Source: Octopus sinensis
Taxonomy: Eukaryota
Reading direction: 5' to 3'
Assembly: GCF_006345805.1 (NCBI RefSeq)
Contig: NW_021832232.1
Span: 488,229 to 552,228 of the forward strand
DNA length: 64,000 nucleotides
The position numbers were made by a program, and so were the translations under genes. The notes below the pieces were generated by a model. The model was not told the origin of the DNA, did not search any database, and worked only from the letters and a program-made list of their open reading frames with translations. Each line of letters starts with the position of its first letter. Within the stretch, counting starts at the first letter, position 1. This document shows, piece after piece, positions 17,506 to 57,352 of this stretch.

Positions 17506-17579
17506 TCAATTAGTATTGCTACTAACAATCTAATTAATAATTATTGAATACTAATATTTGTTTGTCATTTTTCTGTATA

Positions 17580-20175: not shown

Positions 20176-22579
20176 ATGTTTAGAGTGGAGAATGTCGAGT
20201 TGTTAAATGTTAAAATTGAAGATAAATTAAAATATACTGACTTTGATTTTAAGTCTATGATGATTACTCGAAAATTCTTGGTTATTTGCATAAATTATAA
20301 TCTTTTAGCTTAAGCCATACGATTCCTTCATTAAACGAATAAGAAACGAAAAGTGGATTGATAAATTTCATGAATCTGGAGAAGCTCTTCTCCACATTTA
20401 CTACATTTTATATAACTTGAGAAGAAATAGAACTGTTCTTAGGATTTTATCAGAATGTGAGGATTTTCGTACTTTGAGATCATTTTTTGAATGTTTAAAA
20501 AGTCGAGCCCCACCAGTACTCAAACTTATCGTTTTATCAATCCTCAATTCTTGTTTTGTAGTCAGTTTTCTGATGGAAAATAGACAAGATGTACAGATTA
20601 TTCAGTTACTTTGCACCAACTATATTTCTAATGGTGAAATTAGTGATCAATTTTCTCTCAAATTCTGTGGAAAGTCTGTTTGGCATGCTTCGTGTCTGAA
20701 AAGATTTATTTCAAAGGATTTTTATACGGACACCAATTTTGAAAATGCATGTGATTATTCTTATTCAAATGGATTGAAACATGAAGCAATACAATTGAAA
20801 TTCTCAATTTTTTGTCTGTCAATTTTAAGTAAACTTATGTCTGAAGGGGCTATATTTGACATCACACAAGACAATTCACTTATTAATGTTTATTTGGCAT
20901 GTTTTGAACGTTTCCCTGTCGATATTTGTAGTATATGTGTTCAAGCATTTTTAATGTTTGCTGTTTTTTCACCTGTTACAGTACAAGTATATTTTGTTTT
21001 CTCATTTCTAGTCCGAATGTATGGTTAAACAGTTGGTAAATTGTCTTATGAACAGAATTGAGGATTATTCTAATCTAAATTTAGTCCATTCCTTGTTAAC
21101 CATAATCATTTTGAAAGATAAGTTTAACGAAAAGGACGTTAATGAGTCCATACTACATGATTCAATAAAAAAAGTAATTTTAAACACCTCTCCTTTGGAA
21201 TTGGTGACATGTGATCGAGTCCTACCTTCAGAAAATGTAATAATTCAATTAATCGAAATATACGAAAATAAACTACATGATTCCCCTTTTGCCATAATTT
21301 CATTTTATTTGAATGCGATAATATATTACCGAATCACAAAATTAGAATCCAAGGTAGTTATGTAATGATACATATTCCAGGCCGTTATCCAAGAGTATGG
21401 ATTGTTTTTACGTAAGGCTGCTATTATGGGTTGTAATTCAGTCAAGTCTTTATCCATCGAAATCCTCCAGCAGTTGCAAGTTCCTCTTCCGCAGAGATCT
21501 CTCAGTCGTGTTGTTCATAAATGGAAGCTTCAAGATATTAAATTATGGCTCGAATGCATTGGTGCATTAATTTTTTGATAAAAGTTAGGGGTTGGGACTA
21601 CTTCCTATAATAACTGGGGAAATCTTCTTCACCCGGGAGAAATTCTTCTCAATAGTGAGATTTCAGATATTGAGAAGGTTTTTGGGATTGATTTTTCAAG
21701 AATTGGACGCCTTCGGTGAGAAATCTACAATTTATTTGCAGCTTAAAAAGAGAATTGGAATATTTACGAATATGGGCTGACTATTCTTCATTAAATGCAC
21801 CATTTTTGGTCACTTTCCTTGAAAATATATCCTACGATATGCGGAAATATACTTTTTCCATACATTCAGAGGGGGGAATTGAGACAATTAGTGACCGACA
21901 AATCCACAGTGGCGATAAAAAACGAATTATTAACGCTATAAATGGTTTATCTGTACTTTTTAGCATTTCTAGAGTCTAGGAGCATGTCTAACGACAGTAC
22001 TACTCCCTGCAGTATAACTACTCAAATCTGCCCAGAATACTTTGATGTTTTTGTTTCATATCGAAGGGATTTCGGGTCTCATTTAGCAAGGTTGCCTTTG
22101 ATTTATACATTTGTCAGTCTTCTGCAATATGTTTTAAAATCTCGCGGTTTTAAGGTCTTTCTGGACGTGAAAACGCTCAATTCTGGCTGTTTTGGGTCGA
22201 AAATTGTCGAGTCAATTGTTAATAGCAACAACGTCGTGGTTATTCTATCGAAGGGGGCTTTAGACAGGTGTCTTGAGGATGATCAGGACTATTTTAACTT
22301 GGTAGAAATCATTCATTTAAATTTGTGACTTAGGAAATATCCACAGCAATGAATGAGGGAATTAACATCATTCCAATATTTTACAATTTTGACCGACCAG
22401 CTGTAGGCTCATTGCCTGAAGTGCTTGAAAATTTCTTAAAAATGAATGGAGTTAGTTGGTCTCACGAGTATCAGGATGCCACCATTGAGAAACTAATTTC
22501 TTTCCTTACTCCCGATTGTCGATCAATGCATCGTTCATTTTCAATGGTTCTACTGGTTATCTCCCATGTCCTCGCATGA
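20176..22579 (+). CDS. SARM1: SARM1 ortholog (ARM-SAM-SAM-TIR NADase)
   Basis: VPLPQRSLSRVVHKWKLQDIKLWLECIG corresponds to [27 protein letters not shown], and LKRELEYLRIWADYS to FFRELTELKTFANYS. TIR: DVFVSYRRDFGSHLA..LKSRGFKVFLDV..GCF..NVVVILSKGALDRC..DYFNL|EISTA..IIPI..NGVSWSHEYQDATIEKLISFL. Confidence 0.9.
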
Positions 22580-23195: not shown

Positions 23196-23604
23196 AAGAA
23201 AGAATATCCTCGATGATGAGGTCCCCCAAAACCTTCAAGTCAATTTTCTGCGTTTTTGTTAAAATGAACAACAAGAAGTCCTCGACTCACATGATGTGGT
23301 CCCCCAAAACCTTCAAGCCAAAAAATTAAAAAAAATTATTTTCTGCGTTTTTGTTAAAATGAACAACAGAAAGTCCTCGACTCACATGATGTGGTCCCCC
23401 AAAACCTTCAAGCCAAAAAATTAAAAAAAATTATTTTCTGCGTTTTTGTTAAAATGAACAACAAGAAAGTCCTCGACTCACATGATGTGGTCCCCCAAAA
23501 CCTTCAAGCCAAAAATTAAAAAAAAAATTTTCTGCGTTTTTGTTAAAATGAACGACAAGAAAGTCCTCGACTCACATGATGAGGTCCTCCACAACCTTCA
23601 AGCC
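23196..23604. repeat. Minisatellite, about 4.5 copies of a roughly 94-bp unit, inside the Helitron
   Basis: Unit aagaaagtcctcgactcacatgatgtggtcccccaaaaccttcaagcc-A-rich-ttttctgcgtttttgttaaaatgaacaac repeated head-to-tail without spacers. Confidence 0.95.
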
Positions 23605-28682: not shown

Positions 28683-31145
28683 TTATTTTGTTAATTCGAA
28701 ATAGTTTAAAAACTTGCAAATATTGCAAGATTTGTACATTAATGTTAGTAACTTAAGAAGAAGTTCAAGCGCAGCAAAAACTGCCAGTCCAGCAGTATAT
28801 CGACTGATAAAATCATTAGAGAGCAACGTCGTGGCAAGTGTTTGCTTGTAAGTAAGTGTCAGCATTGTGAAAATGAATAAAAGAATGGGTGTATAAATAT
28901 ACTTTGTGTAATTTAACGCTATATAAACGTCAATGAAAAAAATAGAAGAATAATTCCAGCGAATAAACTGAGTGCCATTAAAGAAAATTGAAAGTTTGTT
29001 AAAATTGGAATCGAATAAACAAGCAACAAACCCAACGTTAAATGAAACGCAAAACATATCCAGGCAATAATGAGAGACAAACAATTAAGTATAAAATAAA
29101 TGAAAAAACGCTCCACTTTATTCATATTAGGAGAGCTTATCTCAGTTCGATAAAATAGCACTCCAAGCCACAGATAACAAAATATGACAGAAAATACTCC
29201 AACGACAACAGCGCTATAAATGTAAAATTTCCTAAGGCACAAAAACCAAACTAAATAAAATAAATGGCAATAAACTAACCCAGTGAACCCACATTAAATA
29301 TGAATCAAGCACTTTGAGCAAGATTGGAGTTAATTGTGAGAATTATTGAACAGAAATTCTTTTGTTTGTAACACAGTGAGATCATAATACAGTCCCGTCC
29401 AAATGTTAGAGGCACCCTATTTTTTCCCTAAAAAGGCACTTATTTATTATTTTTCGAAAGATTTTAAAGAATAAATTAAGTTTTTAAAAGAAATTAAACA
29501 TTTCCAAAGTTTTTATAAATATTCGACCGATAGTATTCTCAAACTTGAAAACAAAAAATAATTGGTCGCTCATATGTTAGAGGCACTTATGTAAAAAGCA
29601 ATAATTCTATAATTTATTATTATTAATTCTAATAAAAAATTCAAATGCCTCGTGTATCAGCTTATAACAGGTTCTCGTCATCGAAAAATTAAATGTGGCG
29701 AATCTCAGGTGAAAATATCCAAAGATTTGGGAATCTCTCGTTGTGCCATTCAAAAAATTAAAAAGCGATTTTTACACGGATATTTATATAATGATATGCC
29801 AAAAAAGGGAAGGAACAAAAAATTAACCAAAAATGATGAACGCTATCTTATCAGAATGTCAAAATTACACCCAAAAATGACCGCCAACGATCTTCTTATA
29901 TGCTGTAACTTTTCCGGAAAAGTGAGTCTTTCGACAATTAAACGAATTTTGAGACGCAACAATTTATTCGGACGCATTGCAGTGAAAAAACCAAAATTGA
30001 CTGCATCTCAGGTTGATAAAAGATATACATGGTGTCTTACTAAAATTCCGTGGAATCAAGACGACTGGAATTTAGTGATATTTTCTGATGAATGCCGGAT
30101 TCAGTTAAATCAGATGTCTAGACAATACATAAGAAGACCCCCTGGATCAAAATTACAGAAAGAATATTCAATTGAAACTGTGAAATTCCCTTTATCAATT
30201 ACGATATGGGGAGCAATTAAAAGCAATGGGCAAAGATCAATTGTCCTTTGCCGAAAAACAGTCGACTCCGCCGAATATCAACGCGTTATAAAAGAAGGAT
30301 TTGAAAATTTTTATGAAGAAAATTATTTTCTTCAACAAGATGGAGCAAAATGTCATACATCCAAATCCACTAGAGCGTTTATGGCCGAAAACAACATAAA
30401 ACTCATGGAAAAATGGCCAAGTCAATCTCCTGACTTAAATATAATGAAAATCTATGGGTAATTTTAAAAAAAGAAGTTAAAAAATGTGGAGCATCAACGA
30501 TTCAAGAATTATGGAATGAAACAAAGAAGGCCTGAGAAAACATTGATACAGGTGTGGTTATTAAGCTTTTTGAGTCAATTCCAAGAAGAATATCTTCGGT
30601 AGTCATAAATAATGGAGGAATGACTAAATATTAAATTTTTGGATAATTTTGTCTTTCGTTATTGAAATGTGCTTCTAACATATGAACGATGTATTATTTT
30701 GAGTTTCTTAGTAAATACACATTATAAACTAAATGTGCTCAAAAATTTTAGGTTAAGATTTTTTATTCAATAGTTTGTTATTAACAAAAAACTTTTTTCA
30801 AAAAATGACAAATAAGTGCCTTTTTTAGGGAAAAAATAGGGTGCCTCTAACATTTGGACGGGACTGTAAATCCAAGCCAAATTAACTAGTAAAAATTATC
30901 CAAAAGATTTAACTTGTGAAATGTATGTGGTTCCCCACACAAATTCAAATACAAAGTTAGGAGGAGTAATAAAAAGATCGTTTTGAGCAGAAACATTACT
31001 TATTTGGTCGATTCCAGAATTACCTATCGCAAAATTCAATAAAAAATAAACTTGTCGATATGATGTACCCAGAAACAATATTTCCTACGTAAGAGAGCAA
31101 ACACAGAATAAACAAGAAAATCTGAATCCAATCTACGTTAGCCAT
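28683..31145 (-). pseudogene. 8-TM TspO-motif protein, copy 1 (Tc1 inserted in exon 3, plus a -1 frameshift in exon 4)
   Basis: Same 4-exon structure as the intact copies 40892-41869 and 43172-44144. Exon 3 is split at gagatcataa[TA]aatccaagcc by the element 29390-30866. Confidence 0.85.
29390..30866 (+). mobile_element. Full-length Tc1-like transposon (IR/DR-type ends), TA TSD
   Basis: TA|CAGTCCCGTCCAAATGTTAGAGGCACCCTATTTTTTCCCTAAAAAGGCACTTATTT and its inverse at 30866|TA. Inner repeats near 29575 and 30675. ORF 29652-30461 with FSDE, QQDGAKCH, SPDLN; small indels at both ends. Confidence 0.95.
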
Positions 31146-31315
31146 ACTAATCTGAATAAATAAATTAGTCAAAATGTATTCCAACTATGACAACCGTCAA
31201 ATCTATCTATTATTGATATTTATTCCCAGACGATAAGACATTAAAACTATATTTAATTTTTATTTATAAAAAGTATATTTTTTGATAATTAATGATAATT
31301 TAGTTAGTATTATGT

Positions 31316-31550
31316 TTATGATAGATATGTAGCCTGGCGGATTGCCAAACTGTTTCCCCGGATAATGGCGATCGAGAACCGTTGCATTTGCCAGTCCGCC
31401 TCCTGAGAATCATAAGTGCGCATTGAGATTTTGGCTCCGAGCTTGCGAAGGAACTTTTCAGTTTTTGGACCGAGAGCACCAGACGTCTCCGCCGCGATCG
31501 GCATCACGGAAAACTCCTCCGAGAGGGCAGAATATTTTGATAGCTTTAAA
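31316..31550 (-). mobile_element. CRE-family 3' stub
   Basis: PIAAETSGALGPKTEKFLRKLG..DSQEADWQMQRFSIAIIRGNSLAI. Confidence 0.85.
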
Positions 31551-31778
31551 TCTTCAGCCTTCAGATTGAATCTTCAGATTCGTGAAAATTTCCAGAAAAT
31601 ATAGCAGAGATCTTTAGAGTGAAAATCTATACATTCAAGGCATAATCAAATTATTCATTTCTGAGGGAATTGTCTAGTAAATTAAGCAAATCTGTTTGAG
31701 AAACTTGAAACTCAACGTTAATTTTTTTAATGAAATTTATTTAATGAATAAGAGAAATCGTCAAAAAAAATCTAGCTA

Positions 31779-32027
31779 TTATGTACTGGCTCGCAGGATT
31801 GAGTGACAATTCCCGCGTAAAACAGCCAGCGAGATCCTCTGAATAAGGAATATAAATTCCCTCGGATCTCTGGAGCGGTAGATCCACAGGCGGCCAAGTT
31901 TCTTGAGATGAACAAGCGTCTTGGCCACAAAAACACAGGAAGTTTCGACGACAATTGCCCAAAAGCAAAATCGATCGAGTAAATCCTCATATTTCGTTAG
32001 TTTTGCGAATTCGGCCTTTTCGGCCAA
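31779..32027 (-). mobile_element. CRE-family 3' stub (same subfamily as 39610-40220)
   Basis: AEKAEFAKLTKYEDL..FWAIVVETSCVF..DPREFIFLIQRISLAVLRGNCHSIL. Confidence 0.85.
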
Positions 32028-32639
32028 TGTTAATTAAGAATTTAAATTGAAATTTGATTTTCAAATAATTTTTTTCTTATCAAGAAATATTGATCTTCGA
32101 GGTTTTTAACAAGCCTTTTCTTGAAAATTTTTTTCCTGGCAGTGTACAATAATCAAGATAGTTAACAAATCAAATCTTCTAGTAACGAATACATCAAATT
32201 ATTGAACTGTTATCTCTGTTCAATAGATTGGAAGAATAATGAAACAAATCACTTTCAAGATATTTGAAATATAAACACTTCTTTAGTGCCACAAGATATT
32301 TGAAACGATGTTAATTGTTTAATCAAGGGCGCAATTTTTTGCCGGGAAGTGCCTGAGACGATAATTTGATTTTTAAATTTTGAAATATCAAAAGTTTGAA
32401 ATTTTATGTCACATCATAGCTCTTTTGGAACACACTATCTTAAAAATTTGAAAACGAAAAACACGGAATTCATGAAAAGAGGAATACAGGTAGTACCGGT
32501 GTTCATTTCTAACTTGTTTAAATTATTTTGGAGATGTCGATGTGGGTCACCTTTTCGTGAAAATGTTTACGTAGCAACAAATGAGTTGGTCATCTGACTC
32601 GCTCTTGGTGGCTATTGAGCGGGCACAAAGTCGTCACTC

Positions 32640-33900
32640 CCACCCTTGCTTCTGCTCTCTGGTGACATTGAATCAAATCCAGGACTAAAGGATAATGGAC
32701 ATTTTCTCATCATCATGAAACTGTACATTAGTGGCCTTTATCGCAAAATCACACAACTTTCCTCCTTTATGTGCACAAATCAGATTGACATTGCACTTAT
32801 GGCTAACTCCCCTCATTGACTCTTCCAAAAATCAGAGGAAATTCGACTGTTAGAGCTTATTGTAATAATGGAAATGGTGACGGAGGCGTCCTCAATTTTG
32901 TAAAAAAACTCAATCTGTTCACAGACTCAACAGCTGCTACTCGTTCCCTACTAAACCAAGACATACACATCGAACTTACATCAATCATAGTGGATATTAA
33001 TGGCTCTCCGTACATACTGGTGAACATATGCATTTCTCATTGGGTATCTTCCCAACTTATCCGGATCTCCAGCATAAAAAACCCAATTTCGTAGTGATCT
33101 CAATGCAAAGAATTCTTTATGACTTTCTAACAAACCTAAGGATCGAAGAGGCAACCAAGTAATTTCTAATGAATAATTCTCGCTACGATACACGAAATTG
33201 AGTCTCCCTGGTGACTTAAACACCTTTCTAGACCTTACCTTGTTCTGTTAATATATATCTACTATGACCTCCTGGAAGGTCGTTCGTATATGATCTCCCA
33301 TTTGATTACAACCACAGTTGGATTGAAATCAAACTACAATCACCACGGGATATAAAAAAGAACACATTAATATTACAGGCATGGCAGATGGGATGAGTTA
33401 AAAATTCTTCCTAAACTTCGATGCCTCTTTGTTCAAGTTATTGGAATCTGCTGTAGAATTCTTTAAAACTTGCTTTAAAGCAGCATATAAAAAATGTATT
33501 TTTCGAAGGATCATTGAGAACTTATCTCCTGTATTCATAAGCTCATTTACAACATACGTGAACTCAAAAGAAAAGAAAATTGGATGTGACCTATTAAGAG
33601 ATATCACTCACTTGACAATACAATTGCCAAGCTCATTTCACATCAGAAAACTGTAAAATTGAACTCTTTCATCTCGTCTATTAACTTGAGGACAAAACCA
33701 AATCAATTCTGGAGAACACTCCGGGAAATTTGCTCTTTCAAAATCAGACGAATCTTATGAGACATGTCTATCGGAAAAATTCTAAACAATTTCCATCCAT
33801 GCCTAAGTCAACGTACTATTGAATCACTATGCAAAGATTAGTCAAATTCAGAAAACAAAAAACTCTATAAAACGAAAGGTCAGGAAAAAATAATTCATAA
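32640..33900 (+). mobile_element. Degenerate APE-type LINE with a 2A-like motif upstream of the endonuclease
   Basis: LLLLSGDIESNPGL (32646-32687), then LYISGLYRKITQLSSFM..IDIAL, GDGGVLNFVKK, YILVNI, DLNAKNSL: APE motifs, with stops and frameshifts. Confidence 0.7.
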
Positions 33901-34121
33901 ATAGATGTACTGTGCTTTCGATCATTCACTAACATGATTAAAAACTAGTGCCTATAAACATACAACATAATAGTGTAAATCTACCTTTGAATATAGATCA
34001 AAAAATCGTTTTTATTTTATAATACTGAAAAATGTCAATGTTATTCCTAAATAATTCTATACAAAAAATAAAATAAATGTTTTAAAGAAAAAGAAATTAT
34101 TAGTAAAGTTAATGTTAGAGA

Positions 34122-36355
34122 TTATTTTGTTAATTCGAAATAGTTTAAAACTTGCAAATATTGCAAGATTTGTACATTAATGTTAGTAACTTAAGAAGAA
34201 GTTCAAGCGCAGCAAAAACTGCCAGTCCAGCAGTATATCGACTGATAAAATCATTAGAGAGCAACGTCGTGGCAAGTGTTTGCTTGTAAGTAAGTGTCAG
34301 CATTGTGAAAATGAATAAAAGAATTGGTGTATAAATATACTTTGTGTAATTTAACGCTATATAAACGTCAATGAAAAAAATAGAAGAATAATTCCAGCGA
34401 ATAAACTGAGAGCCATTAAAGAAAATTGAAAGTTTGTTAAAATTGGAATCGAATAAACAAGCAACAACCCAACGTTAAATGAAACGCAAAACATATCCAG
34501 GCAATAATAAGAGACAAACAATTAAGTATAAAATAAATGAAAAAACGCTCCACTTTATTCATATTAGGAGAGCTTATCTCAGTTCGATAAAGTAGCACTC
34601 CAAGCCATAAATAACAAAATACAGTCCGACCCCAAAATGGGGCAGACCCCAGGGTGGGGCACCCTCGGATTTTGGGGCACCCCCGCAATTTGGGGCACTT
34701 TATTCCAAAAGTACATTTTGGCAGAAAAAAATAAAAATCGATAAAAAATTATGGAATTTTTGGGGCACCATAAAATCATTTATAAGGAATAAAAATAAAA
34801 TAAAATTATAATAAATTAATTATTTTTGTTTTATTTTTAATTTATATTTTTATTGTTGTGGTTATGGATTACGAAACTAAATTGAAGATTGCTAAAGAAA
34901 TTTTGAAGAAAAATTTATCTGAGAGGCAACTAATGAAAAAGTACAACACAAGTAAAGGAACAATATCAAGAATAAAACGAAATATTGTACCTTTCTTGCA
35001 ACACGGCAATACTATTTCTGAGGAATATGACACATTTAAAGCCGATAAAGATAAATTTGATGATCAAGTCTTTGAAATATTTCAAAGACTACGCGTAGAT
35101 AAAATTCCGATTTCAGGCCCTATTTTGAAAAAAATTGCCTTAGTTACAGCTTCAAAAATTGGATTTACTTCTTTTAAAGCTTCCAATGGGTGGCTTGATA
35201 GATTTAAATTGCGGCATGAACTTCAATTTAAGTCAATATGTGGTGAAAAAGCTTCATGTGATTTATCTTATGTGAAAAATTATTTTGAAAAATATGACCA
35301 GAAAGTATTAAAATATGGACCTGAGAATATATTTAATTGTGATGAAACTGCGCTTTTTATAAAAAGAACTCCTCAAAAATCATTTGTTGAACAAGGCGAA
35401 CCGTGTTTTGGTTATAAACAAGGGAAAGAAAGACTCACTGTTCTTCTATGCTGCAGTTTAATCGGGGAAAAACTTAATCCATTAATTATTGGAAAATATA
35501 AAAAACCTCGGTGTCTAAAAAATTTGATGTTCAAGATGCGAAGACATGAACAATAATGTTTATGATACATATTCAGAAACCGAAAATAGTGAAAATGTCG
35601 TAGCAAAAACAAAAGATCTGCTTAACAATTTAGAAGAAAAAATTTCTAATGTTGCACCAAGTATGCTCCGAGATTTTTTTGATTTTCGGCTGAAATTGAC
35701 GAACAATATCAGACAAAACTCTACAAATAAAAAGAAAATAACTGAATATTTTAGTAAAAATGTTTTTTGATGTTTATTAATGGTTTAATTTTTAAAAAAA
35801 TAACAAACCCCTGTTTTTGGGGCACCCCCGCATTTTGGGGCACTTGGTGCCCCATTTGGGGGTCGGACTGTATGACAGAAAATACTCCAACGACAATGGC
35901 GCTATAAATGTAAAATTTTCTAAGGAACAAATACCAAGCTAAATAAAATAAATGACAATAAACTAACCCAGTGAACCCACATTAAATATGAAGAAAGCAC
36001 TTTGAGCAAGATTGGAGTTAATTGTGAGAATTATTGAACAGAAATTCTTTTGTTTGCAACAAAGTGAGATCATAATAAATCCAAGCCAAATTAACTAGTA
36101 AAAATTATCCAAAAGATTTAACTTGTGAAATGTATGTGGTTCCCCATACAAATTCAAATACAAAGTTAGGAGGGGTAATAAAAAGATCGTTTTGAGCAGA
36201 AACATTACTTATTTGGTCGATTCCAGAATTACCTATCGGAAAATTCAATAAAAAATAAAACTTGTCGATAGGATGTACCCAGAAACAATATTTCCTACGT
36301 AAGAGAGCAAACACAGAATAAACAGGAAAATCTGAATCCAATCTTTGGTTGCCAT
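34122..36355 (-). pseudogene. 8-TM TspO-motif protein, copy 2 (pogo element inserted in exon 4)
   Basis: Near-identical to copy 1. Exon 4 is split at aacaaaa[TA]tgacagaa by the element 34622-35870. ATG at 36355-36353. Confidence 0.85.
34622..35870 (+). mobile_element. pogo/Tigger transposon, internally deleted, TA TSD
   Basis: TA|CAGTCCGACCCCAAAATGGGGCA ... TGCCCCATTTGGGGGTCGGACTG|TA. ORF 34858-35556 has CENP-B HTH, FKASNGWLDRFK, IFNCDETAL, KERLTVLLC; the later DDE part is missing. Confidence 0.95.
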
Positions 36356-36529
36356 GTCTATCTGAATAAATTGGTCAAAATGTATTTTTAAATATGATGA
36401 ACGTAAATCTAAGGAAACACGCTTTTTTATAGATAACTTTAAGTAAAAATTAATAATTTTAATCAATTAAAAATCAATTTTTTATCAGTGCAAATATTTG
36501 GTTTCTAGCCAGGGAGGAGTATTTTTTGC

Positions 36530-36665
36530 GAGCTCCGCGTGTCTTACCGTTGAGCCGGGCTCAGCAACTTCGAGATCAGATTAAGGAGAATGTGTCGGAG
36601 CATGCCGCCTCCCAGATGAGGCATTCCCCGTGATTGAAGGGAAATGTTGTCATGCCATCTGGGCA
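36530..36665 (-). mobile_element. CRE-family REL fragment
   Basis: [25 protein letters not shown] on the minus strand. Confidence 0.75.
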
Positions 36666-36839
36666 CTTTCTGTTTCCGAAAAATAGTATATAGTAAACAT
36701 GAGTAAATTTTGGAATTTTTAAATCTTGTACTTATTGCAAAATATGTAAATTAATGTTCGTAGTTTAACAACAAGTTATACTCTCCTAAAACTAATATTC
36801 CTTCAGTATAGGGACTAATTAAGTTATTCCCCGCCCACG

Positions 36840-37070
36840 GCATTGCAAGATTTTTTGTATGTAAGTGTCAACATTGTATTGAAGGCGAAGAAAATTGTGT
36901 GCAAATAAACTTGGCGTATTTTAACGAAATAATAACGTTTAAAAAAGAGAAAAAAATGTAGGCAGAAGAAAATTACAAATAGTCATCAATTCTATTTTCA
37001 TATTCATATTTTGTTGTTTACACTACGGAATGAACATTGTCTGAAGCAGTAAAAATTTATCTATTTATTT
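36840..37070 (-). pseudogene. Relic of a further 8-TM TspO-motif paralog (exon 4 fragment)
   Basis: Degenerate match: FLNVIISLKYAKFI..MLTLTYK-like, gtaagtgtcaacattg shared with the copies. Confidence 0.5.
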
Positions 37071-37109
37071 TATTAAAACACCAAGACCACGGTAAAAACA
37101 GAACAAACG

Positions 37110-38260
37110 TCACGTGATCTCGATGCACTCAACCAGAGTCCTCATCCTCTCTCGGTGATCTATCCACGAGCCCAACAAGATCGCACCGGGCGGCTGGCAG
37201 CATTTGTCGGGGTATTTGCAAACAGACTGAGGTTCAGCTTGATCAGGTTTTCCAGAGGAGCCGAACTAGAGCGTTTGTTATCGTGCGACCAACGTTGGGT
37301 TAATTTGTGGGCCCTTTGTTTAATCTCCACGATTCTCCTCCTGTTGGACCACGATAACCGCGGACCCCATGATTCGAATAAGCCGATGGCCTCGTCGAGA
37401 GGGCTAAAGTTGTACAGATTGCAATTCTTTAGTTTCGAGTTCAATATCTCCTGGAACGATGGCCAGTTCGCCGCATTGTAGTTGTATGAAACAGGAACTT
37501 TCCTGGTGACAACTTCCCTTTTGATCTTCACCGCGATCGGGTTGTGGTCACTTCTGGTTTCATAGAGGACTGACCACTCCGTAGACGATGCGAGGGAACA
37601 TGAAGAACATAGAGTTATATCGGGTAACGTAGGTTTATCAGTCACTCTGAATGGAGTCTTTATGTTCCTCGAAAAATCGTTCAAAATTGTTAAGGAGTCC
37701 GATTGGGAAAGTAAAGATTTTCCTCTCGTATCCGCCGACTGAGTTGACAGCCAAAGCGGGCGTTTCGTATTGAGGTCCCCGCATAAGATGACCCCGTCGA
37801 TGCGTGCCAGATTAGAGAGAGTTGGGAGGCTATAGCTCCTTGCACAAGAACTGGGAGGTGGAGTGTACATATTGACAAGCCATAATCGTCCCTTTGTTGT
37901 GCCAAGCGAGATCCCGATTAACTCAGAAACCTCATCAGCTTTGATAAGGTTTCTCACTTCAGCGGAGAAGTCTGTGAATTTCAGGTTGTTTCTGATTAAA
38001 GTGAGCAGACCACCACCTCCTTTGCCTTTCCGGTCCAGCCTGATAGCCTTGTAGCCCGGAAATGAAGGCGTGTGATTATTAGGAGCTAGTTTGGTTTATT
38101 GAATCATAGCCACGTTAATTCTCAGGTTAGTCAGGAGTGTGAAGAGTTCTCTGATCTTTCCTTCAATCCCGTTGATGTTTAGCTGGAGAGCCATGAAGAG
38201 TCTTCTACTTCTACGGGCTGCGGATATCTTCCGGGAGAAATCGGTCTTAAGTAGAGTGCG
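37110..38260 (-). mobile_element. APE endonuclease region of a LINE (3'-truncated)
   Basis: LQLNINGIEGK..VAMIQ(E), GGGLLTLI, LVNMYTPP, ILCGDLN, PDITL, RSDHNPI. Confidence 0.9.
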
Positions 38261-39231
38261 TTGTCCTGACAAAAAATGTCGCCAGGGGACAAGTTTTAAT
38301 GATTTTTTTCCAGTGAGAATTAGGTGCCCAAAAAAATTAATAAACTTACTCAATTTTAAAAACTGATTCTTACAGTTTATTAATTTTTTTACTACTTCTT
38401 TAATCTTTGTCTTTTATTTTGCATACGAACGTACAGAATTTCTTCATTCTTCCTGCTTTCTGTGCTTTCTAAGACTTTTTCTATAACTTGTTGTGTTAAA
38501 ACTGTCAGATTATAAAAAACAAGTTTTATCAAAATTAAAAATTAGCACATCTGCATATTGACACCTTTAGTAACGATAATTATCCAGTCCACTTTTTGCT
38601 TTGGGTACCCCTTGGCATCAAAATAATTTTTCCCTTACCTTTTATCGATTTTGAAAAATTAAGGAAAAAGATTATTCAATTAATGAAAGAGATGATGTTG
38701 TTTATCAGCTACTAATCGTTATATTCATGGATGCTTTAATGACAGACACACCCGAATATCATTCTCAACATTTATTCTCGCACTATGGAATAACTTTAAA
38801 TAGAAAAATAGAAAATACTTTGTTCGGAGAAATATTTTGGTGGAAATAAAAGCAAAAAATCAATTATATAATCAATTATGATATTTTGATATCATTTTTC
38901 ATCAAAATTCAATTAATAATGGATATTCAATTAAGTTTTTGTGTGAATTTATTTATTCAACAAATTCTTCTCAAATACAATCATAAAATCATAAAATTTT
39001 GCGTGAAAAGGATTGATAAATAACTTAAGATCTAATTCATTAATTTCAGGTATATATTTTTCAATTATTTTCTCCAATCCAAATAAATAAGAAGTTATAT
39101 GATTTTTTAATTTTCAATTTTATTTAATTTTAGATGGCAGATGTTATCATTCAATTTGTCAAACATAGTAAAATTAGAATTTTGTGTATTATTCGTCACA
39201 TTCTAGAGCTACGAGATGCCAGGGCTGCGAG

Positions 39232-39330
39232 CAGGGTTGTTGGATTTAAATCATTTGATTTTAATCAATCAACAAAAAGTCAATGATTTATATCATTAAA
39301 AATCAAAAAAAATCATTTAAAATTGTTTAA
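39232..39330 (+). mobile_element. Possible hAT-type transposon end
   Basis: CAGGGTTG followed by repeated GATTT(A/T)AATCA motifs. No partner end found. Confidence 0.35.
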
Positions 39331-39609
39331 ATTGATTAAATGTATGGTAGAAAACGTGATTCCTTATGGGTTCACTTCGATGAACATATTTTTCTCTTTT
39401 GAAAAAAGAATATGAGTCAGTTTATGAATGGGTCTCTCGTCTCTTTCTCATTTAAAATCCACCGCTAAGCTTTAGGACGCTTTTAAACGTTTACGGTCTC
39501 GAATTAATTCCTGTTTAATGTCGCACGATGTTAGCGCGGCTGTTTGTCTCCTGTCATCTTCCGATTCTGTTTGTACAATCACAACCGATGTTGCTTGGAT
39601 TCTCAAGGA

Positions 39610-40220
39610 AAAGCATCCTATTGAAAGACCAATAACCTTTGATATGGCGTATTCCTCCTGTTTTCAGACCTCACCCCTGCCGTTGTGGGGCTAAAGTTGA
39701 CGTCTTTGGGCTACATTCTCTGTCTTGTCGAATGAGTGCCGACCGATTTTCTCGGCACAATGAAATTAACAATCTAATTCACACAGCTCTGGAAAGAGCT
39801 GGTTTCCCTTCAGTTCTGGAACCGACGGGTCTTGTCCCTGAAGATGCAAAACGTCCAGACGGCTGTACGGTTTTCGCTTTTGAATCCGGGAAGTAGCTTG
39901 TTTGAGACGTCACCTGTCCGACTCTTTCGCCAAGGGAGCCTTGAATTCCACTGCTTGTCGACCCGGTTCGTCGGCCGAGAAGGCCAAATTCACGATACTG
40001 ACGAAATACGAGGATTTACGCAATCAATTTTGCTTTTGGGCAATTGCCGTCGAGACTTCCTGTGTTTTTGGGGCCAAGACGCTTGCTCATATTAAGAAAC
40101 TTGGCCGTCTGTGCACCCATCGCTCCAGAGATCCCAGGAAATTTATATTCTCTATTCAAAGGATCTTATGGCTGTTTTAGGCGGGAATTGTCTCTCAATT
40201 CTGCGAGCCGGTACTTAATA
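39610..40220 (+). mobile_element. 5'-truncated CRE-family copy (zinc knuckle + REL)
   Basis: HPCRCGAKVDVFGLHSLSC..FSRHNEIN..LEPTGL..DAKRPDG..AVETS..QRI. Confidence 0.9.
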
Positions 40221-40891
40221 GCTAGATTTTTTTAATTGCATTTTAATAAAAAAATAATGAAAATAAAACTATATAAATAAAAACATTATTTTTAAAAAGT
40301 CGTAATTTTTAATTTTCTTTTTTCGTACCGATGAATTAAAAACGTGAATTCACAAAAAATGTCTTTAAATAAGATAGCATTAGACCCCAATAAGTATTTA
40401 CTAGCATTGATAAATATATATGTTCGCGAGGAAAATATTGCCAAATTATTTCAGCAATTAACTTTAGTTTAAAAAATATTTTCACTTAAAAATTAAAGAC
40501 AAGTTATTTATGGTGATTAAAATAGAAAGTAAGCATCAAAATTAAATAACATTCGAGAGTTGTAGTAATTTATTTTTGTGCACGTCCATAACATTTGCTA
40601 TCTTTTGCTGGCGACAGGAGATCTTTGTCATGCTTCAAATCTTGATTAACAACGTAATATTAAAAAATAATTCATAAATAGCTATAATATGTTATTGATC
40701 ATACTGTAACATGAATAAAAACCAGTGCCTAGAAACATAGAAAATAATAGTGTTAATCGACCTTTTAATATAGATCAAAAATCGTTGTTATTTTATAATA
40801 CTAAAAAAATGTCAATGTTATTCCTGAATTCTATAAAAAACTAAAATAAATGTTAAAAAAATTATGAAATTTAATGTTGGAGATTATTTTG

Positions 40892-41869
40892 TTAATTCGA
40901 AATAGTATGAACCTTGCAAATATTGCAAGATTTGTACATTAATGTTAGTAACTTAACAACAAGTTCAATCGCAGCAAAAACTGCCAGCCCAGTAGAATAG
41001 CGACCGATAAAATCATTATAGAACAACGTCGATGCAAGTGTATGCTTGTAAGTAAGTGTCAGCATTACAGCAATGATTAGCAAAATTGGTGTATAAATAT
41101 ATTTTGTGTAATTCAACGCAATAATGACGTCGATAAAAAAATACAGGAGAATAATTCCAGCCAACAGACTAAGTCCCATTAAACAAAATTGAAAGTTTGT
41201 TAAAATTGGAATCGAATAAACAAGCAACAAACCCAACAGTAAATGAAACGCAAAACATATCCAGGCTATAGCCAGGGACAATCCATTGAGTATAAAATAA
41301 ATGAAAAAACGCTCCAATTTATTCATATCTTGAGAACTTATTTCAGTTCGATAAAGTAGTACTCCAAGCCATAAATAACAAAATATAACAGAAAATATTC
41401 CAGCAACAAGCGCGCTATAGATATAAAATTTCCTAAGCAGTAAAAACCACGCTAAATAAAATAAATGACAATAAACTAACCCAGTGAACTCATATTGAAT
41501 ATAAAGAAAGCACTTTGGGCAAGATTGGAGTTAATTTTGAGAATTAATGAACAGAAATTTTTGTTTTTGCATAAAAACGAGATCATGATAAATCCAAGCC
41601 AAATGAACTATTGAAATAATCAAAATTGTTTAACTTGTGAAACATAGGTAGTTAACCATACAGACTGAAAAACAATGCCTGGAGGAGTAATAAAAAGATT
41701 ATTTAAATTAGATACATTAGTTACTGAGTTGATTCCAGAACTACCTATCAAACATTTCGACATTAAAAGAAAAACTTGTTGAAAAAATGTAGCCAGAAGT
41801 AATATTTCCTAGATAAGAGAGCAAACACAGAATAAACAGAAAGATCTGAAACCAATCCACGTTAGTCAT
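40892..41869 (-). CDS. 8-TM TspO-motif membrane protein, copy 3 (intact, 296 aa, 3 introns)
   Basis: Introns of 31, 27 and 29 nt give an open 891-nt CDS: MTNVDWFQIFLFILCLLSY..LFITPPGIVFQSVWLTTY..ILNGLSLAIAW..KYIYTPIL..KSCNICKVHTISN*. Confidence 0.85.
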
Positions 41870-42119
41870 ACTAATATAAATAAATAAATTAGTCAGAATA
41901 TATTTAAAATGTGATGACCGTAAAACTAAGGAAACACGTCATTATTTGAAAATTTGTAAGAAATGTTATATTTAAAGCGTATAGGTTATACTCTTAAATT
42001 GTTAAGTATATATCAGTGTGAAACACAATTCAACTATATTTATCGGTCAATTTTTCGGAAGCATTTAACATTATATGATTTCATAAATGACTTTGAGTAA
42101 AAATTAATAATTTTAATCA

Positions 42120-42330
42120 ATCGCAGAATCAATTTTGTATAACAACACAAGAATTATTTAAATAATTATTGTTAGAAAAGAACGAGTAAATTTTGATTAT
42201 TTTGAATCTTGCAACTATTGCAAGATTTTTAAGTTAATGTTAGTAGTTTAACAGCAAGTTCAGTGTAAATAAACTTGGCGCACTTTAACACAATACGTCA
42301 ACGAAATTCGATAATAATTTCAGTTGTTAG
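42120..42330 (-). pseudogene. Relic of another 8-TM paralog (3' end, internally deleted)
   Basis: tattgcaagattt..aatgttagtagtttaacagcaagttc matches the copy 3' end; the flank resembles 43085-43200. Confidence 0.55.
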
Positions 42331-42439
42331 ACTTAGTGTCATAATGTAAAAATCAAAGTTTATAAAAATGTGTTTGATGTAAATGGCCTGTGCATCCACT
42401 CGGCGACTAATTTAAATTAGCAAACAGTTCTTTCATGTT

Positions 42440-42690
42440 CTTTTTGTTTAAAAAAAATTCAGTAAAAACAAATTGAATGTGATGAAAGCACAAAAATTCA
42501 ACAAATAGAACTTTGGCAAATGAGCTGGGAGCGAAAATAAAAATCGTCTCTGTCGTTATGACCAATGATCGAATTGTGTCAAAATTCTTCAAGAACTAGG
42601 TGGAAGCGCTCGGAGTGAAAAACAGAATAAAGGCATATATACAGACACTGGTGTTGCGCAAAATTTTAGAAAGCTTCAAATGGAGATAAA
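42440..42690 (+). mobile_element. REL non-LTR family 'B' 3' stub
   Basis: LANELGAKIKIVSVVMTNDRIVSKFFKN*..LGV..KAYIQTLVLRKILES; same C-terminal motif as 4424-4560. Confidence 0.7.
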
Positions 42691-42999
42691 ACACGGATTA
42701 TCAATGCTTGTTGAAAAAGTAGGACCTGAATCTAGACTTCGCGTTGACACGGATCTGCCTATCCATGCACTGAACGTTGGCGCTAAGAGGGTGAGGTCGA
42801 TGTAACAAAATACTACGAATTAAGAAAACGGAAACTAAATAACTAATCCTAGAAAATGCAAACATTTGTCTAGACTTGTTAATTCGTTAAGAGAAAACAC
42901 GTGATATTTAGAAAAATTCCGCGAATCGTAAATCGATTTCTTCAAAAGTATTTAATCTAAAACCACCAATATTATCTATAAAGAATAATCTAAAACCAT

Positions 43000-43058
43000 T
43001 AATCTTATTTCTACATGCTAGAGAAACCGGAGTAACTAACTAACTAATCTTATTTCTA
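43000..43058 (+). mobile_element. 31-bp LINE-like stub with (TAAC)3 tail and 14-bp TSD
   Basis: taatcttatttcta|catgctagagaaaccggagtaactaactaac|taatcttatttcta. Confidence 0.65.
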
Positions 43059-43171
43059 AATATTATTGACTTTAAATTAATACTTTTAATCGATACCAGA
43101 ATCAACTTTTTCTTTACTTAACAAAAAAATTATTTAAGAAAAATTATTGTTAGAAACGAAAAAAGTGAACC

Positions 43172-44144
43172 CTAAATACTGCTGACCTCGCGAATATTGC
43201 AAGACTTGTACATTAATGTCATTAGTTTGAAAAACAATTCAATTCCAGCAAAAACTGCAAGTCCAAGAGTATAACGTCCAATCAAATCATTTGCCAACCA
43301 CGGTAATGTAAATTTCCTCTTGTAAGTAATTATTAGCATTACACAGATGAATAAAAGAATTGGTGTATAAATATACTTCGTATAATTTAACGCTGTATAA
43401 ACATCAATGAAAAAATACAGAAGAATAATTCCAGCCAAAAGACCAAGTGCCATTAAACAAAATTGAAAGTTTGTTAGAATTGGGACAGAATAAACAAGCA
43501 ACAACCCCAACGTTAAATGAAACGCAAAACATATCCAGGCAATAATGAAAGACAAACCATTGAGTATAAAATAAATGAAAAAACGCTCCACTTTATTCAT
43601 ATCAGGAGAGCTTATCTCACTTCGATAAAATAGCACTCCAAGCCAAAGATAACAAAATATGACAGAAAATGCTCCAACGACAACAGCGCTATAAATGTAA
43701 AATTTCCTAAGGCACAAAAACCAAGCTAAATAAAATAAATGGCAATAAACTAACCCAGTGAACCCAAATTAAATATGAAGAAAGCACTTTGAGCAAGATT
43801 GGAGTTAATTGTGAGAATTATTGAACAGAAATTCTTTTGTTTGCAACAAAGTGAGATCATAATAAATCCAAGCCAAATTAACTAGTAAAAATTATCCAAA
43901 AGATTTAACTTGTGAAATGTATGTGGTTCCCCATACAAATTGAAAAACAAAGCCAGGAGGGGTAATGAAAAGATCGTTTTGACCAGAAACATTACTTATT
44001 GGGTCGATTCCAGAATTACCTTTCGGAAAATTCAATAAAAAAAATAAAACTTATCGATAGGATGTATCCAGAAACAATATTTCCTACGTAAGAAAGCAAA
44101 CACAGAATAAACAGGAAAATCTGAATCCATTCTTCGTTATCCAT
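43172..44144 (-). CDS. 8-TM TspO-motif membrane protein, copy 4 (intact, 294 aa, 3 introns)
   Basis: Introns of 31, 28 and 29 nt give an 885-nt CDS: MDNEEWIQIFLFILCLLSY..SNVSGQNDLFITPPGFVFQFVWGTTYISQ..ILNGLSFIIAW..KYIYTPIL..*. Confidence 0.85.
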
Positions 44145-46266
44145 CTAATCTGAATAAATAAATTAGTCAAAATGTATTCCAACTATGACAACCGTCAAAT
44201 CTATCTATTATTGATATTTATTCCCAGACGATAAGACATTAAAACATATATTTATTTCCAGAAAATCAAAACTATTTTTTATTTATAAAAAGTAAATATA
44301 TTATTAATAAATGTTGACTAATACAGAGTTTGATGCCTACAATAAGCTTTTATTCGACTCACGAAAGCTTGCTGCTTTGGAAAGATTTATCTATCGATTC
44401 AAAATAAACAAATATTAATAACACTTTCCATCGTGCTGACTGGGGACATTTCTCCCGTCACGATATTTTTAATTTGCCAGCTTTGTAAAACTGCAGACTT
44501 TTAGTGCAATTTGGAATTGTCATTCCATCTTATCCTCTGCTGCTAATTAAATACTAAATAATTAATTTGAACATTTGGTAGTTTTCTTAAAAATAGAAAC
44601 AGGCTGTACAAAAATAACGTCCCATAGAAATAGGATAATGTCAAAAGTAATGCTTTGACTATGAATTGTTAATTAGTCAATTTAATTAATTAATTTCAAA
44701 TTTTATAAAAAATACACCAAAACATCCTGGACTGTCAATTCTGATATTTCAATTGTAATTTCATTGATTTTATAGCCTTATCTTTTTGAGGTTAATATTT
44801 TTGAAGCATATTGGCACAAAAAATAAATATCATTTTTAATAGAAATCTTCTTTTTCACGCAATTTCGTGTAAAGTAGACTATCGGCTTTTCGTTTCAAGC
44901 AATTCTGCCACTTTTTCAGACAATTTCGTGCATAAGAAGATTATCGGTTTATTGTTTCAAGCAAATTCGCTACTTTTCCAAGCAATTCCGTCACTTTTTC
45001 AAGCAATTTCGCCATTTTTTTATATTTATTTTAAAAATAAATTTACCTTTTTTTATGTCAATTAAATATATTTACATTTTTTGTCATGAGTAGAAACAAA
45101 ATTAACAATGATACTAGAAGATTGCTAATAACTCACTCAAATTCAGGACTAAGCAAGGAAATCTCAAAAATACTTAAACTTCCAAGGAGTACAATAGTTT
45201 CAATAGTTAAAACATTTCATAATGAGGAAAGAATATTTAAAAAACCAACAGGTGGAAATAGATCATCAAAGCTGAATGAAAATCAAAAAAATCAAAATAG
45301 AAAATGGGTCGATTGTCACCCTACGATAACATTACGTGACTTACAAAATAAATTTTTTTCAGAACAAAATTTAGCCATCAACAAAAGCACTGTCCATCAA
45401 TGTTTAAAACAGTTTCGCTACACACTTAAAAAAACTGATGTATTAGAAATTGATTAAACTTAATGATTCTTTTGTCTCATTAATTTTGCTCTTTTTTTCG
45501 GCTTTCCTTTTTGAATAAATAATAATTCATTCATAGAGCTATAACAAAAATCTATATTAGTAAGAAGAGGATATTTCTAAAAAATAAATGTGACCGGTTC
45601 TGAGCGGACCCGGTTTTTGAAGGACCAGGTGCGTATTTAAAATAAAAAATGGATAAAATAATTATTTTCATTAGAAAATAAAATTGGTTTTATTTTTTAT
45701 TATATTATTGTAATAATTAATTAATTAAATTCAACATAAAAAATGGGTTTCGTTGTACTTCCAAAAGCAAATCTTCAAAAAATTAAAAAAATCAAGATTT
45801 GAAGGATCTAGATGAAGTGATTGAAAAAAGAGAAAAGCATAGATTTATAATTCACGCAAAAAAATTTGAATTCTCTGACGGAAAGGGATTTATTCGAAAA
45901 AACAATTGCTTACTCAGATTTTTTTGTATAGAAGAGAAAGAACTAAAGCTAACAATGATTGAGGTTATCTATAAATCTCCTTATGTTTAGAAGGCACATA
46001 ATTCTAATCATTTTGGCAGAGATAGAATGATTAGTCAGCTGTCAGGATAAATTTACGGTGTTGCTTGAAATGAGATTGAAAATGTTACTAAAAACTGTGT
46101 TTTTTGTCAGGTATAATAATTAAAATAAGGCGATTAGCTAATACCAACAATAGAAGGCTTCCCTTATTTGATAATGTCGATACAACAAAATATAAAATTA
46201 TCGAAGAAAATAATTACAACTATTCTTTAGAAGATGAAAATGGAAACGTCCATAAAAATATTAATA

Positions 46267-47018
46267 TGTCGCGACCCACGCTGGCGACATCCCACGCTGG
46301 CGACCAGAGCGACCTTCATTGTTGACAAGATTGACAGGTGGAATTTATTCACCACTTCTTCAATTAAATTTCAAGTCTTACCAGAAGCAGTTTATTTTTT
46401 AAAGATTTGCAGACAACAAATTTGCTGTAGATGTCAATAATTGTCAGTATCCAATTAGATCCATCGTTAAAATCTTTATATCTTCTAACAACAATAAGAT
46501 CCGCCTGGAATCTTTCATTGGGTTTTCCTGCAGTTACATGGTAATTAGAATCCGACCTAGGTATTTTTTTTAAATACTTTCAATGGTAGGGCAAATTTAC
46601 AAATTTCGCAGTCTTTTATAATTTGTTCGATGATTGACGTTTTACAGTGAAATAGAATTCACTGCACTTTTTCTGAAGCTTTCGTATTCCCCATTGGGAT
46701 TCTGGTTAATGGCGAATGCTAGTGTCCTCATCTCCATTTCATTGTCCAGACAAATGACCAATTTGTGTTTTTGGTTATTCTCGTTTTTAGATAAAGACTA
46801 TGAGTTAGGAGTCGCAAATATACCGATCATTAATAATGATTAATTGAGTCGCTTTTTTCATGCTAACATCTTTTGAGAGAAACCAATTTTTTTTGTAAAA
46901 TGAAAAACCATTTCTTAAAATGAATTTTTTCGGTTTGAATCACCTGTCAAACTGAAGGTCATAACCTGTCAAACTGATGGTCGCCAGCGTGGGATGGTCG
47001 CCAGCGTGGGTCGCGACA
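46267..47018 (-). mobile_element. Ginger2/TDD-type element B (deletion derivative) nested in element A, 5-bp TSD TAATA
   Basis: TAATA|TGTCGCGACCCACGCTGGCGAC ... GTCGCCAGCGTGGGTCGCGACA|TAATA. Minus strand IIEQIIKDCEIC and PNERFQADL..WILTIIDIYSKF (rve core). Confidence 0.85.
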
Positions 47019-47077
47019 TAATATTTCTAGAATAAAAAGTTCACTAAATTTTAAAATTCTCTAAGTGAAGAGATACC

Positions 47078-47358
47078 GCGGCCGTAGGCCGCATAGGGGA
47101 CTAGTTGAATTTTATATCAAACCTTGTGGTTAGAATAGTTTTTATTGACAGTTATTTTAAGATTTGATTTTTAAAATATTTAGGTTTAAAATCATTAAAT
47201 AAAAATATAATGTTTTTTTAATATTTTACACAAAAATCAAATAAAATTACTTATTTAAAATTTAAAAGCACTTTTGAAGGGTATGTTGGTTTTGTGAGCA
47301 ATGATAAAATCAGAAACAGCTTCCTTCGCTCGCTCGGCCGACGGATTTCAAGGACTAG
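47078..47358 (+). mobile_element. Two Helitron-like 3' ends
   Basis: GCGGCC-GTA-GGCCGC hairpin then ..CTAG|T (47101-47104). A second GC-rich CGCTCGCTCGGCCGACGG then ..GGACTAG|T (47355-47358). Confidence 0.5.
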
Positions 47359-48059
47359 TCACGATCCAAGAGAGTATTCTTGGCTCCGGAACGTCTGTCG
47401 TTTGCTGTGATCCGAGGGAACGGCTTCGCCATTCGCGAGGCTGGCCGGTTGTCTCGTGACGCCAGTAATTAGCTTAGCTATCTTTTCACGTCCTTATGTT
47501 GTTAAAAAAAAAAAAAGTTTTAGAATTATTTAAACATGGTCTAATTTATTGTATAACTATTTTCAGGATAAAATAAAACGATTTATACAATTTTTTGTGT
47601 GGTCCTTCCAAAAACCGGGTCCGCTCTAAAACCGGTGACAATAAATTTTTAAGAATTTGGCGAAATTGCTTGAAAAAGTGACGGAATTGCTTGGAAAAGT
47701 AGCGAATTTGCTTGAAACAATAAACCGATAATCTTCTTATGCACGAAATTGCTTGAAAAAGTAACAGAATTGCTTTAAACAAAAAGGCGATAATCTACTT
47801 TACACGAAATTGCGTGAAAAAGTGGCGAAATTGCTTGCAAAAGTAGCGAAAAAGTGTGGAAAACCCTATATATTATAAAACAATTCTCGTTAATTGTTAT
47901 CACTGAATTTATAACAATTAATCATTAATACAGTATTAAAAAGGCATGATTAAGATTTATGTAAAAAACAATAAAAAACTTAATCCGAATTTATATCTCT
48001 TATGACAGAAATAACAATTAAATACAACAAAACTGATATTTTTGTTTACGAAAAAAAAG

Positions 48060-53427: not shown

Positions 53428-57352
<3,925 letters not shown>

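Follow-up and report, generated by a model that had tools for sequence, protein, structure and literature searches.

On its minus strand, between 28.4 and 44.3 kb, a window of 64,000 nucleotides from Octopus sinensis (contig NW_021832232.1) carries four head-to-tail gene copies of four exons each, here called A to D, together with two relics of 3' ends, as delineated by self-BLASTN, tblastn and MAFFT. This locus is very probably a partly decayed tandem array of highly divergent, lineage-specific members of an old eight-helix family, the N-terminal five helices of which would be remote homologues of the TspO/MBR proteins. TSPO is a stress protein and a heavily studied drug and imaging target, whose core function is still disputed. 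Two of the six units, C and D, are intact genes, while the other four (two pseudogenes and two relics) are dead. A preliminary description of this DNA, made from the letters alone, had listed the same four minus-strand copies, the two intact lengths of 294 and 296 aa and the two relics, and had proposed a tandem TspO-motif family under birth-and-death evolution that serves as a parasite-specific receptor repertoire. The inventory and the mode of evolution were confirmed, but the functional proposal was not.

Once the introns are removed, copies C and D are uninterrupted open reading frames (ORFs) of 296 and 294 aa. All introns of the array copies are of the GT-AG type and 27–31 nt long. The gene models of C and D are sound, because the intron lengths are not multiples of three, stop codons lie inside the introns, and junctions 2 and 3 of copy D sit within gap-free blocks when it is aligned with intron-less relatives. 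The two copies are 77% identical. Their exons differ at 18.8% of the sites, with 0.56 synonymous (dS) and 0.14 nonsynonymous (dN) substitutions per site and a ratio (omega) of 0.25, which indicates long-term purifying selection on real, constrained genes. Copy C has one conspicuous replacement: at codon 62 (window positions 41690-41640) it carries Leu for the motif Gly (VWLTTY), at a position conserved in most family members, whereas A, B, D and TSPO have VWGTTY.

It seems unlikely to us that no unit of the array is alive or transcribed, in which case C and D would be pseudogenes silenced not long ago, or that the array is an assembly or haplotype artefact. Four of the six units are visibly dead, the region is saturated with transposons, and genes with these products are not on record in the public gene collections searched. 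However, C and D keep their full frames and all six splice sites, with an omega of 0.25 over a dS of 0.56, and the copies of the array diverge by 3–19% and bear distinct transposon insertions, so that they are neither identical assembly duplicates nor collapsed haplotypes. Judged by their sequences, C and D are two new, very divergent and probably functional genes, with mini-intron models, that standard domain searches miss.

In all four copies, a pyrimidine-rich stretch ending in AG (...TTCAGATTAG) abuts the ATG, at 44145-44157, 41870-41882, 36356-36368 and 31146-31158, and about 110 bp of upstream sequence is also conserved beside it. This AG is a possible splice acceptor, used either by an intron in the 5' untranslated region or in trans-splicing.

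Neither C nor D matched a Pfam family, even at E<=10. A word-indexed protein search with copy D gave no match, and with the family profile only six fragmentary ones. When 1.84 billion representative proteins were scanned by HMMER without filters, the profile of C and D yielded 21 matches, all of 214-340 aa, the best with E-values of 5.5e-13 and 5.6e-12. When the window pair was compared with these relatives by hhalign, the alignment extended over the full length (276 columns) with 99.6% probability and E 7.9e-25. The identity of the window copies to the family members is 19-26%; among the 1.84 billion proteins there was no relative above about 26% identity and none at the level of an orthologue. 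Copies C and D fit the size class of the family (260-340 aa) and its eight transmembrane (TM) helices.

The relatives among animals include proteins from the annelid Owenia fusiformis (A0A8J1XM95), the molluscs Elysia marginata (GFS04982.1) and Patella vulgata (two loci, LOC126820458 and LOC126821789) and the copepod Tigriopus californicus (A0A553NBS5). All named animal members are "uncharacterized", except one Tigriopus UniRef entry that was automatically named "Tryptophan-rich sensory protein". Bacterial genomes scanned for ITPAGWTF furnished multi-helix relatives of 250-290 aa in Sphingomonas, Gordonia, Aeromicrobium and Brevibacterium, without any Pfam or NCBIfam assignment; by sequence, they form a bacterial branch of this family that lacks annotation. 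In the bacterial relatives (L004-L015), the motif ITPAGWTFSIW is present letter for letter, and in Sphingomonas colocasiae there are two such genes, on separate scaffolds. The genes beside the bacterial relatives encode a protease, TetR, MipA-like, ATP-grasp and HNH proteins, with no common theme among these neighbourhoods and no functional hint from the context. Given the bacterial and free-living animal relatives, the eight-helix architecture is ancient and not limited to animals or parasites. The family is thus already in public databases as uncharacterised proteins, without a Pfam family of its own, and a literature search (TspO in Schistosoma, PF03073, PTHR33802, FdTSPO2, invertebrate TSPO-like) found no description of it.

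The family is recognised by the motif ITPAGWTFSIWG..Y, with the hallmark ITP-x-G-x-x-F-x-(x)-W-G-x-x-Y located where helix 2 begins; the corresponding stretch of loop 1 and helix 2 in copy D is NVS...FITPPGFVFQFVWGTTY. T51, P52, F57, W61 and Y65 are each at least 90% conserved, and N-x-S/T precedes the motif in 16 of the 18 members with an intact loop 1. Further landmarks are the Trp of helix 3, the helix 5 motif NG....W...A, an Asp that closes helix 6 and the Y-x-R/K-Y..TP with which helix 7 starts; W112, N166, W174 and P232 are invariant in the full-length alignment. In the window copies, the TM5 motif (NG...YA.W..IA..LNL) is partly degenerate but aligned at N166-G167, W174 and A178, and so is the C-terminal motif (D.....Y.RY..TPY), aligned at D218, Y225-x-K227-Y228 and T231-P232.

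The window copies have the same length class, eight-helix layout and landmarks as the long family, and their intron 1 lies at about the place where the two nearest relatives have one. These relatives, P0002 and P0001 (AT-rich genomic contigs L001 and L003, GC 0.36-0.37), have a splice acceptor near that position, within loop 1 (L001 about 9990-10010, L003 about 800-815), with no upstream exon within 400 bp. The rest of their coding sequence is a single exon, and introns 2 and 3 of the window genes are accordingly lineage-specific gains or were lost elsewhere. In contrast to the long family, the window copies have these two extra mini-introns, one extra motif residue, as in canonical TSPO, and replacements of GW and of two conserved Asn residues (F55; S109; T/L182).

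The resemblance of the motif to TspO is supported as genuine remote homology, which the sequence profiles support for the family and which would extend only indirectly to the window proteins. Five of the 23 family members touch the Pfam family TspO_MBR (PF03073), over profile positions 29-144 of 145 and in the N-terminal half of the proteins. Two of them pass the gathering threshold of 24 bits (P0001 with 26.8 and P0008 with 27.2), while P0019 (23.9) and P0005 (19.9) remain below it. We further compared the family with an alignment of 81 mostly proteobacterial TspO sequences, consisting of human TSPO (confirmed against 2MGY with E 1e-91) and 80 bacterial TspO genes from metagenomes. With hhalign, the 23-member family matched this alignment at 94.7%, E 5.7e-8 and score 58.5, and at 96.3%, E 1.8e-9 and score 67.6 when seven bacterial eight-TM relatives were added. 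The alignment is colinear, pairing residues 49-185 of copy D with residues 41-154 of human TSPO, which correspond to TM2-TM5, and the landmark residues PP...VWG..Y, N..W and W...A..LN are paired. The null comparisons stayed far lower: 0.4% for the reversed family, at most 0.5% and score 17.5 for 40 column shuffles, and at most 0.6% for reversed 25-column blocks, with no reversed or shuffled null above 17.9 overall. Only blocks of 12 columns, in which the motif can survive, reached up to 54% and score 36.7.

In the window copies themselves, the spacing PP-(6)-VWG is exactly that of canonical TSPO, and the motif agrees with human WHPPHWVLGPVWGTLY in 8 of 16 residues. The TspO signature (W-x-PP-x-W ... 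VW..LY; TM3 N-x-x-W; TM5 W...A..LN) is kept in part, at P52, P53, V60, W61, G62 (Leu in C), T63, Y65, W112, W174 and A178. TspO/MBR proteins (PF03073; 2MGY, 4UC1 and 4RYI) have five helices and about 160 aa, as compared to eight helices and about 295 aa in the window protein; both have the loop 1/TM2 motif, the TM3 Trp and the TM5 W...A, but the window copies have no CRAC-type motif after TM5.

Several observations weigh against the homology or limit it. W42 of the signature is replaced by Ile and W47 by Phe in the window copies; the TM3 Asn (N-x-x-W) has given way to Ser and the TM5 Asn (L-N) to either Thr or Leu. The window proteins alone had no Pfam match at E<=10 and no PDB sequence match, and the window pair alone reached only 8.5% against TspO by hhalign, restricted to the motif. 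PDB sequence searches with the family profile and with P0008 did not match TSPO either, and the pair profile matched nothing at all. The high-GC bacterial relatives had no Pfam match, and a narrow hidden Markov model (HMM) built from the 81 TspO sequences could not tell family members apart from shuffled decoys in sequence-versus-HMM scoring. Given these noise-level scores of the home-made HMM, the link to TspO rests on the profile-profile scores with their nulls. Lastly, Foldseek with the model of copy D against the PDB gave a best E of 0.56, with TSPO outside the top 50 and only non-significant matches to helical-bundle, G-protein-coupled receptor (GPCR) and designed proteins; all-helical membrane bundles are difficult for this method, and here a whole eight-helix query met a five-helix target that covers 5 of the 8 helices, so that this outcome does not amount to a refutation.

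These negatives, together with the bare passing scores of two of the five TspO_MBR hits, would be compatible with convergence or chance among Trp-rich hydrophobic helices as the source of the resemblance, with the eight-helix family as an independent fold. We consider this improbable, as it does not account for profile-profile scores of 58.5-67.6 against nulls of at most 17.9 (36.7 where motif blocks survive), for the colinearity over four helices with paired landmark residues, or for the PP-to-VWG spacing. Of the TspO relation claimed earlier, the family-level homology over TM2-TM5 therefore stands, but the window proteins themselves fall below every Pfam threshold.

The predicted structure agrees with the eight hydrophobic helices of the preliminary description. 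With the 23-sequence alignment, AlphaFold2 (AF2) modelled copy D with a mean local confidence (pLDDT) of 84.7 and a pTM score of 0.83, whereas two sequences alone gave an unusable model (pLDDT 44). The model has eight long helices (residues 3-31, 54-80, 96-117, 121-152, 155-190, 196-221, 231-250 and 258-287), in agreement with hydropathy, a long loop 1 with a short helix, and tight TM3-TM4 and TM4-TM5 turns. Solved TSPO structures share these features of loop 1 and of the TM3-TM4 and TM4-TM5 turns. The C-terminal 100 residues showed no TspO similarity and no internal repeat by hhalign, and the last three helices are a family-specific extension with its own conserved motif, D...Y-x-R/K-Y-x-x-T-P. 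An origin of the protein by internal duplication, with the N-terminal half matching the C-terminal half, was likewise rejected by hhalign.

The peptides quoted in the preliminary description are all present, namely the motif, the variants DQISNVSAQND, NSVTNVSNLNN and DPISNVSGQND, and KQTLATTLLSND, KHTLASTLFYND and KRKFTLPWLAND. Its statement that the differences cluster in loops holds in part. Between C and D there are two hot spots, loop 1 and the stretch from the end of TM7 into loop 7, the latter with a compensated indel pair in D. The overall enrichment is mild, however, with 31% of residues differing outside the helices and 21% inside (Fisher p = 0.11). Omega is about 0.5-0.65 in the two hot spots and 0.2-0.36 elsewhere. 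Positive or diversifying selection in the variable loops is thus rejected, and these loops are under relaxed constraint.

The earlier proposal had cast the array as a parasite-specific expansion, a repertoire of non-GPCR receptors by which host haem, porphyrin or lipid would be sensed or scavenged. In its favour, the TspO homology of the N-terminal half is supported, the differences between the copies gather in two loops that, by the eight-TM topology, would lie on the same membrane side, and the absence of close relatives in the proteins scanned makes the subfamily lineage-restricted or fast-evolving. But members of the family are also present in animals that live freely (annelids, molluscs and a copepod) and in bacteria from soil or from hosts, which speaks against its being parasite-specific; only two copies in the window are alive and four are dead; and the omega values (0.25 for the whole, about 0.6 for the variable loops) point to relaxed constraint in these loops rather than to diversification. 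We judge such a repertoire most unlikely, and the claim should not be passed on. The sensing of haem, porphyrin or lipid by the window proteins would be an extrapolation from TspO that is not supported.

By analogy with TspO, the N-terminal bundle (helices 1-5) would form a hydrophobic pocket capped by the long loop between helices 1 and 2, and this predicted pocket would bind a small lipophilic ligand, possibly a tetrapyrrole or a sterol. A simple transfer of TspO function is disfavoured, since Trp42, Trp47 and both conserved Asn residues are replaced in the window copies. Nearly all animal members have the N-x-S of loop 1; if it served for glycosylation, the loop would be luminal or extracellular. 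Actinobacterial relatives carry N-E-S at the same position, which weakens this interpretation, and the N-x-S may instead be structural. A bolder proposal, which we would hold only as a long shot, is that the eight-helix, TspO-extended proteins differ in function from mitochondrial TSPO, reside at the cell surface or in the secretory pathway, and combine a TspO-derived pocket with a three-helix add-on to bind or process a small lipophilic molecule. If so, fast-evolving arrays with variable loops 1 and 7 would tune function to lineage-specific, possibly host-derived ligands. An ancient eight-helix relative in many invertebrates and bacteria would in any case offer an independent evolutionary view of the purpose of the TspO pocket.

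The decay of the array can be followed in detail (Table 1). Copies A and B are near-twins (dS 0.065) and have a frameshift of exon 4 in common, the 1-bp deletion that lies after 28942 in A (alignment column 728). They thus stem from a copy that already carried the frameshift and multiplied as a pseudogene, before a different DNA transposon struck each of the two. Both transposons have the ends CAGT...ACTG, and each insertion is accompanied by a TA duplication. Copy D differs from A and B with a dS of 0.07-0.12 in exons 1-3 and an intron divergence of 2%, but with a dS of 0.33-0.36 in exon 4, indicating that D is a mosaic produced by gene conversion or unequal exchange. Of two older copies, nothing is left but 3' stumps. 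The array probably grew by unequal crossing-over and was reshuffled through gene conversion. Pseudogenes, relics, mosaicism and the divergence of the copies bear out the birth-and-death evolution proposed earlier. Ordinary animal birth-and-death tandem families have the same head-to-tail duplicates, conversion tracts, pseudogenes made by transposons and frameshifts, and truncated relics; as compared to these, the present array shows nothing unusual and is small and mostly decayed. The locus nonetheless illustrates clearly how such an array dies, with transposon insertions, frameshifts common to more than one copy, gene conversion and leftover stumps.

Table 1. Features of the array and flanking genes, in window positions.
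Feature	Position	Strand	Remarks
Copy D	43172-44144	-	Intact, 294 aa, 4 exons; splice model verified by translation
Copy D exons	44144-44051, 44019-43910, 43881-43755, 43725-43172	-	Introns of 31/28/29 nt
5' flank of copy D	44145-44257	-	93% identical to copy A flank 31146-31258; ends ...TTCAGATTAG directly before ATG
Relic 2	42190-42297	-	Degenerate 3' end of exon 4 (about codons 261-296), one stop; ~320 bp upstream of copy C; tblastn E 5.5e-4; blastn 42203-42262 vs 40908-40967
Copy C	40892-41869	-	Intact, 296 aa, 4 exons
Copy C exons	41869-41776, 41744-41635, 41607-41481, 41451-40892	-	Introns of 31/27/29 nt
Relic 1	36707-36945	-	Degenerate 3' end of exon 4 (about codons 216-296), stops; ~350 bp upstream of copy B; found by tblastn; blastn 36722-36946 vs 40910-41140, 68% identity
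Copy B, 5' part	35871-36355	-	Exons 1-3 and start of exon 4; ATG at 36355
Pogo/Tc5-like DNA transposon, 1.25 kb	34620-35870	+	Within exon 4 of copy B; TA target-site duplication; ends CAGTCCGACCC...GGGTCGGACTG
ORF of pogo/Tc5-like element	34858-35556		Matches HTH_Tnp_Tc5 and DDE_1
Copy B, 3' part of exon 4	34145-34619	-	Lacks 1 bp after 34468 and again after 34380; premature TAA (codon 292)
Copy A, 5' part	30867-31145	-	Exons 1-2 and start of exon 3; ATG at 31145
Tc1/mariner DNA transposon, 1.48 kb	29388-30866	+	Within exon 3 of copy A; TA duplication
Terminal inverted repeats of Tc1/mariner in copy A	29388-29459 / 30796-30868		Self-BLASTN
ORF of Tc1/mariner in copy A	29652-30461		Matches DDE_3 and HTH_Tnp_Tc3_2
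Copy A, 3' part	28706-29387	-	Rest of exon 3, intron 3, exon 4
Copy A lesions	29307-29305; after 28942; 28712	-	In-frame TGA; 1-bp deletion; 1-bp insertion
E2F	8031-8612	-	Flanking animal gene
Tetraspanin	13955-14377	-	Flanking animal gene
EF-hand protein	16946-17416	+	Flanking animal gene
TIR-domain protein	21942-22328	+	Flanking animal gene
DHX8/PRP22-type helicase	54240-57100	+	Flanking animal gene

The window is AT-rich eukaryotic DNA (GC about 0.26-0.46), in which an Rfam scan found no RNA family. The array is flanked by ordinary animal genes that have no visible functional link to it. Pieces of Tc1/mariner, pogo/Tc5 and non-LTR retrotransposons are abundant. A non-LTR retrotransposon at 9429-12426 (+) encodes a PHD-finger ORF (417 aa) followed by a long reverse transcriptase ORF (592 aa), and non-LTR fragments occur at 39639-40233, 31764-32025 and 51951-52806, with diverged C-terminal pieces of the same family lying between the TspO-like copies. 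Directly upstream of copy D, a Tc1/Sleeping-Beauty-like element (44850-47850) contains an HTH_SB ORF (45086-45457) and has inverted ends (44850-45030 / 47640-47850) made of 62- and 21-bp tandem repeats. Another Tc1/mariner element, at 17574-19051, has terminal inverted repeats of ~195 bp (17574-17767 vs 19051-18858) and overlapping transposase ORFs at 18316-18801 (HTH) and 17786-18397 (DDE_3), and is frameshifted but otherwise complete. A 95-bp tandem repeat is present in 3.8 copies with 96% matches at 23243-23604.

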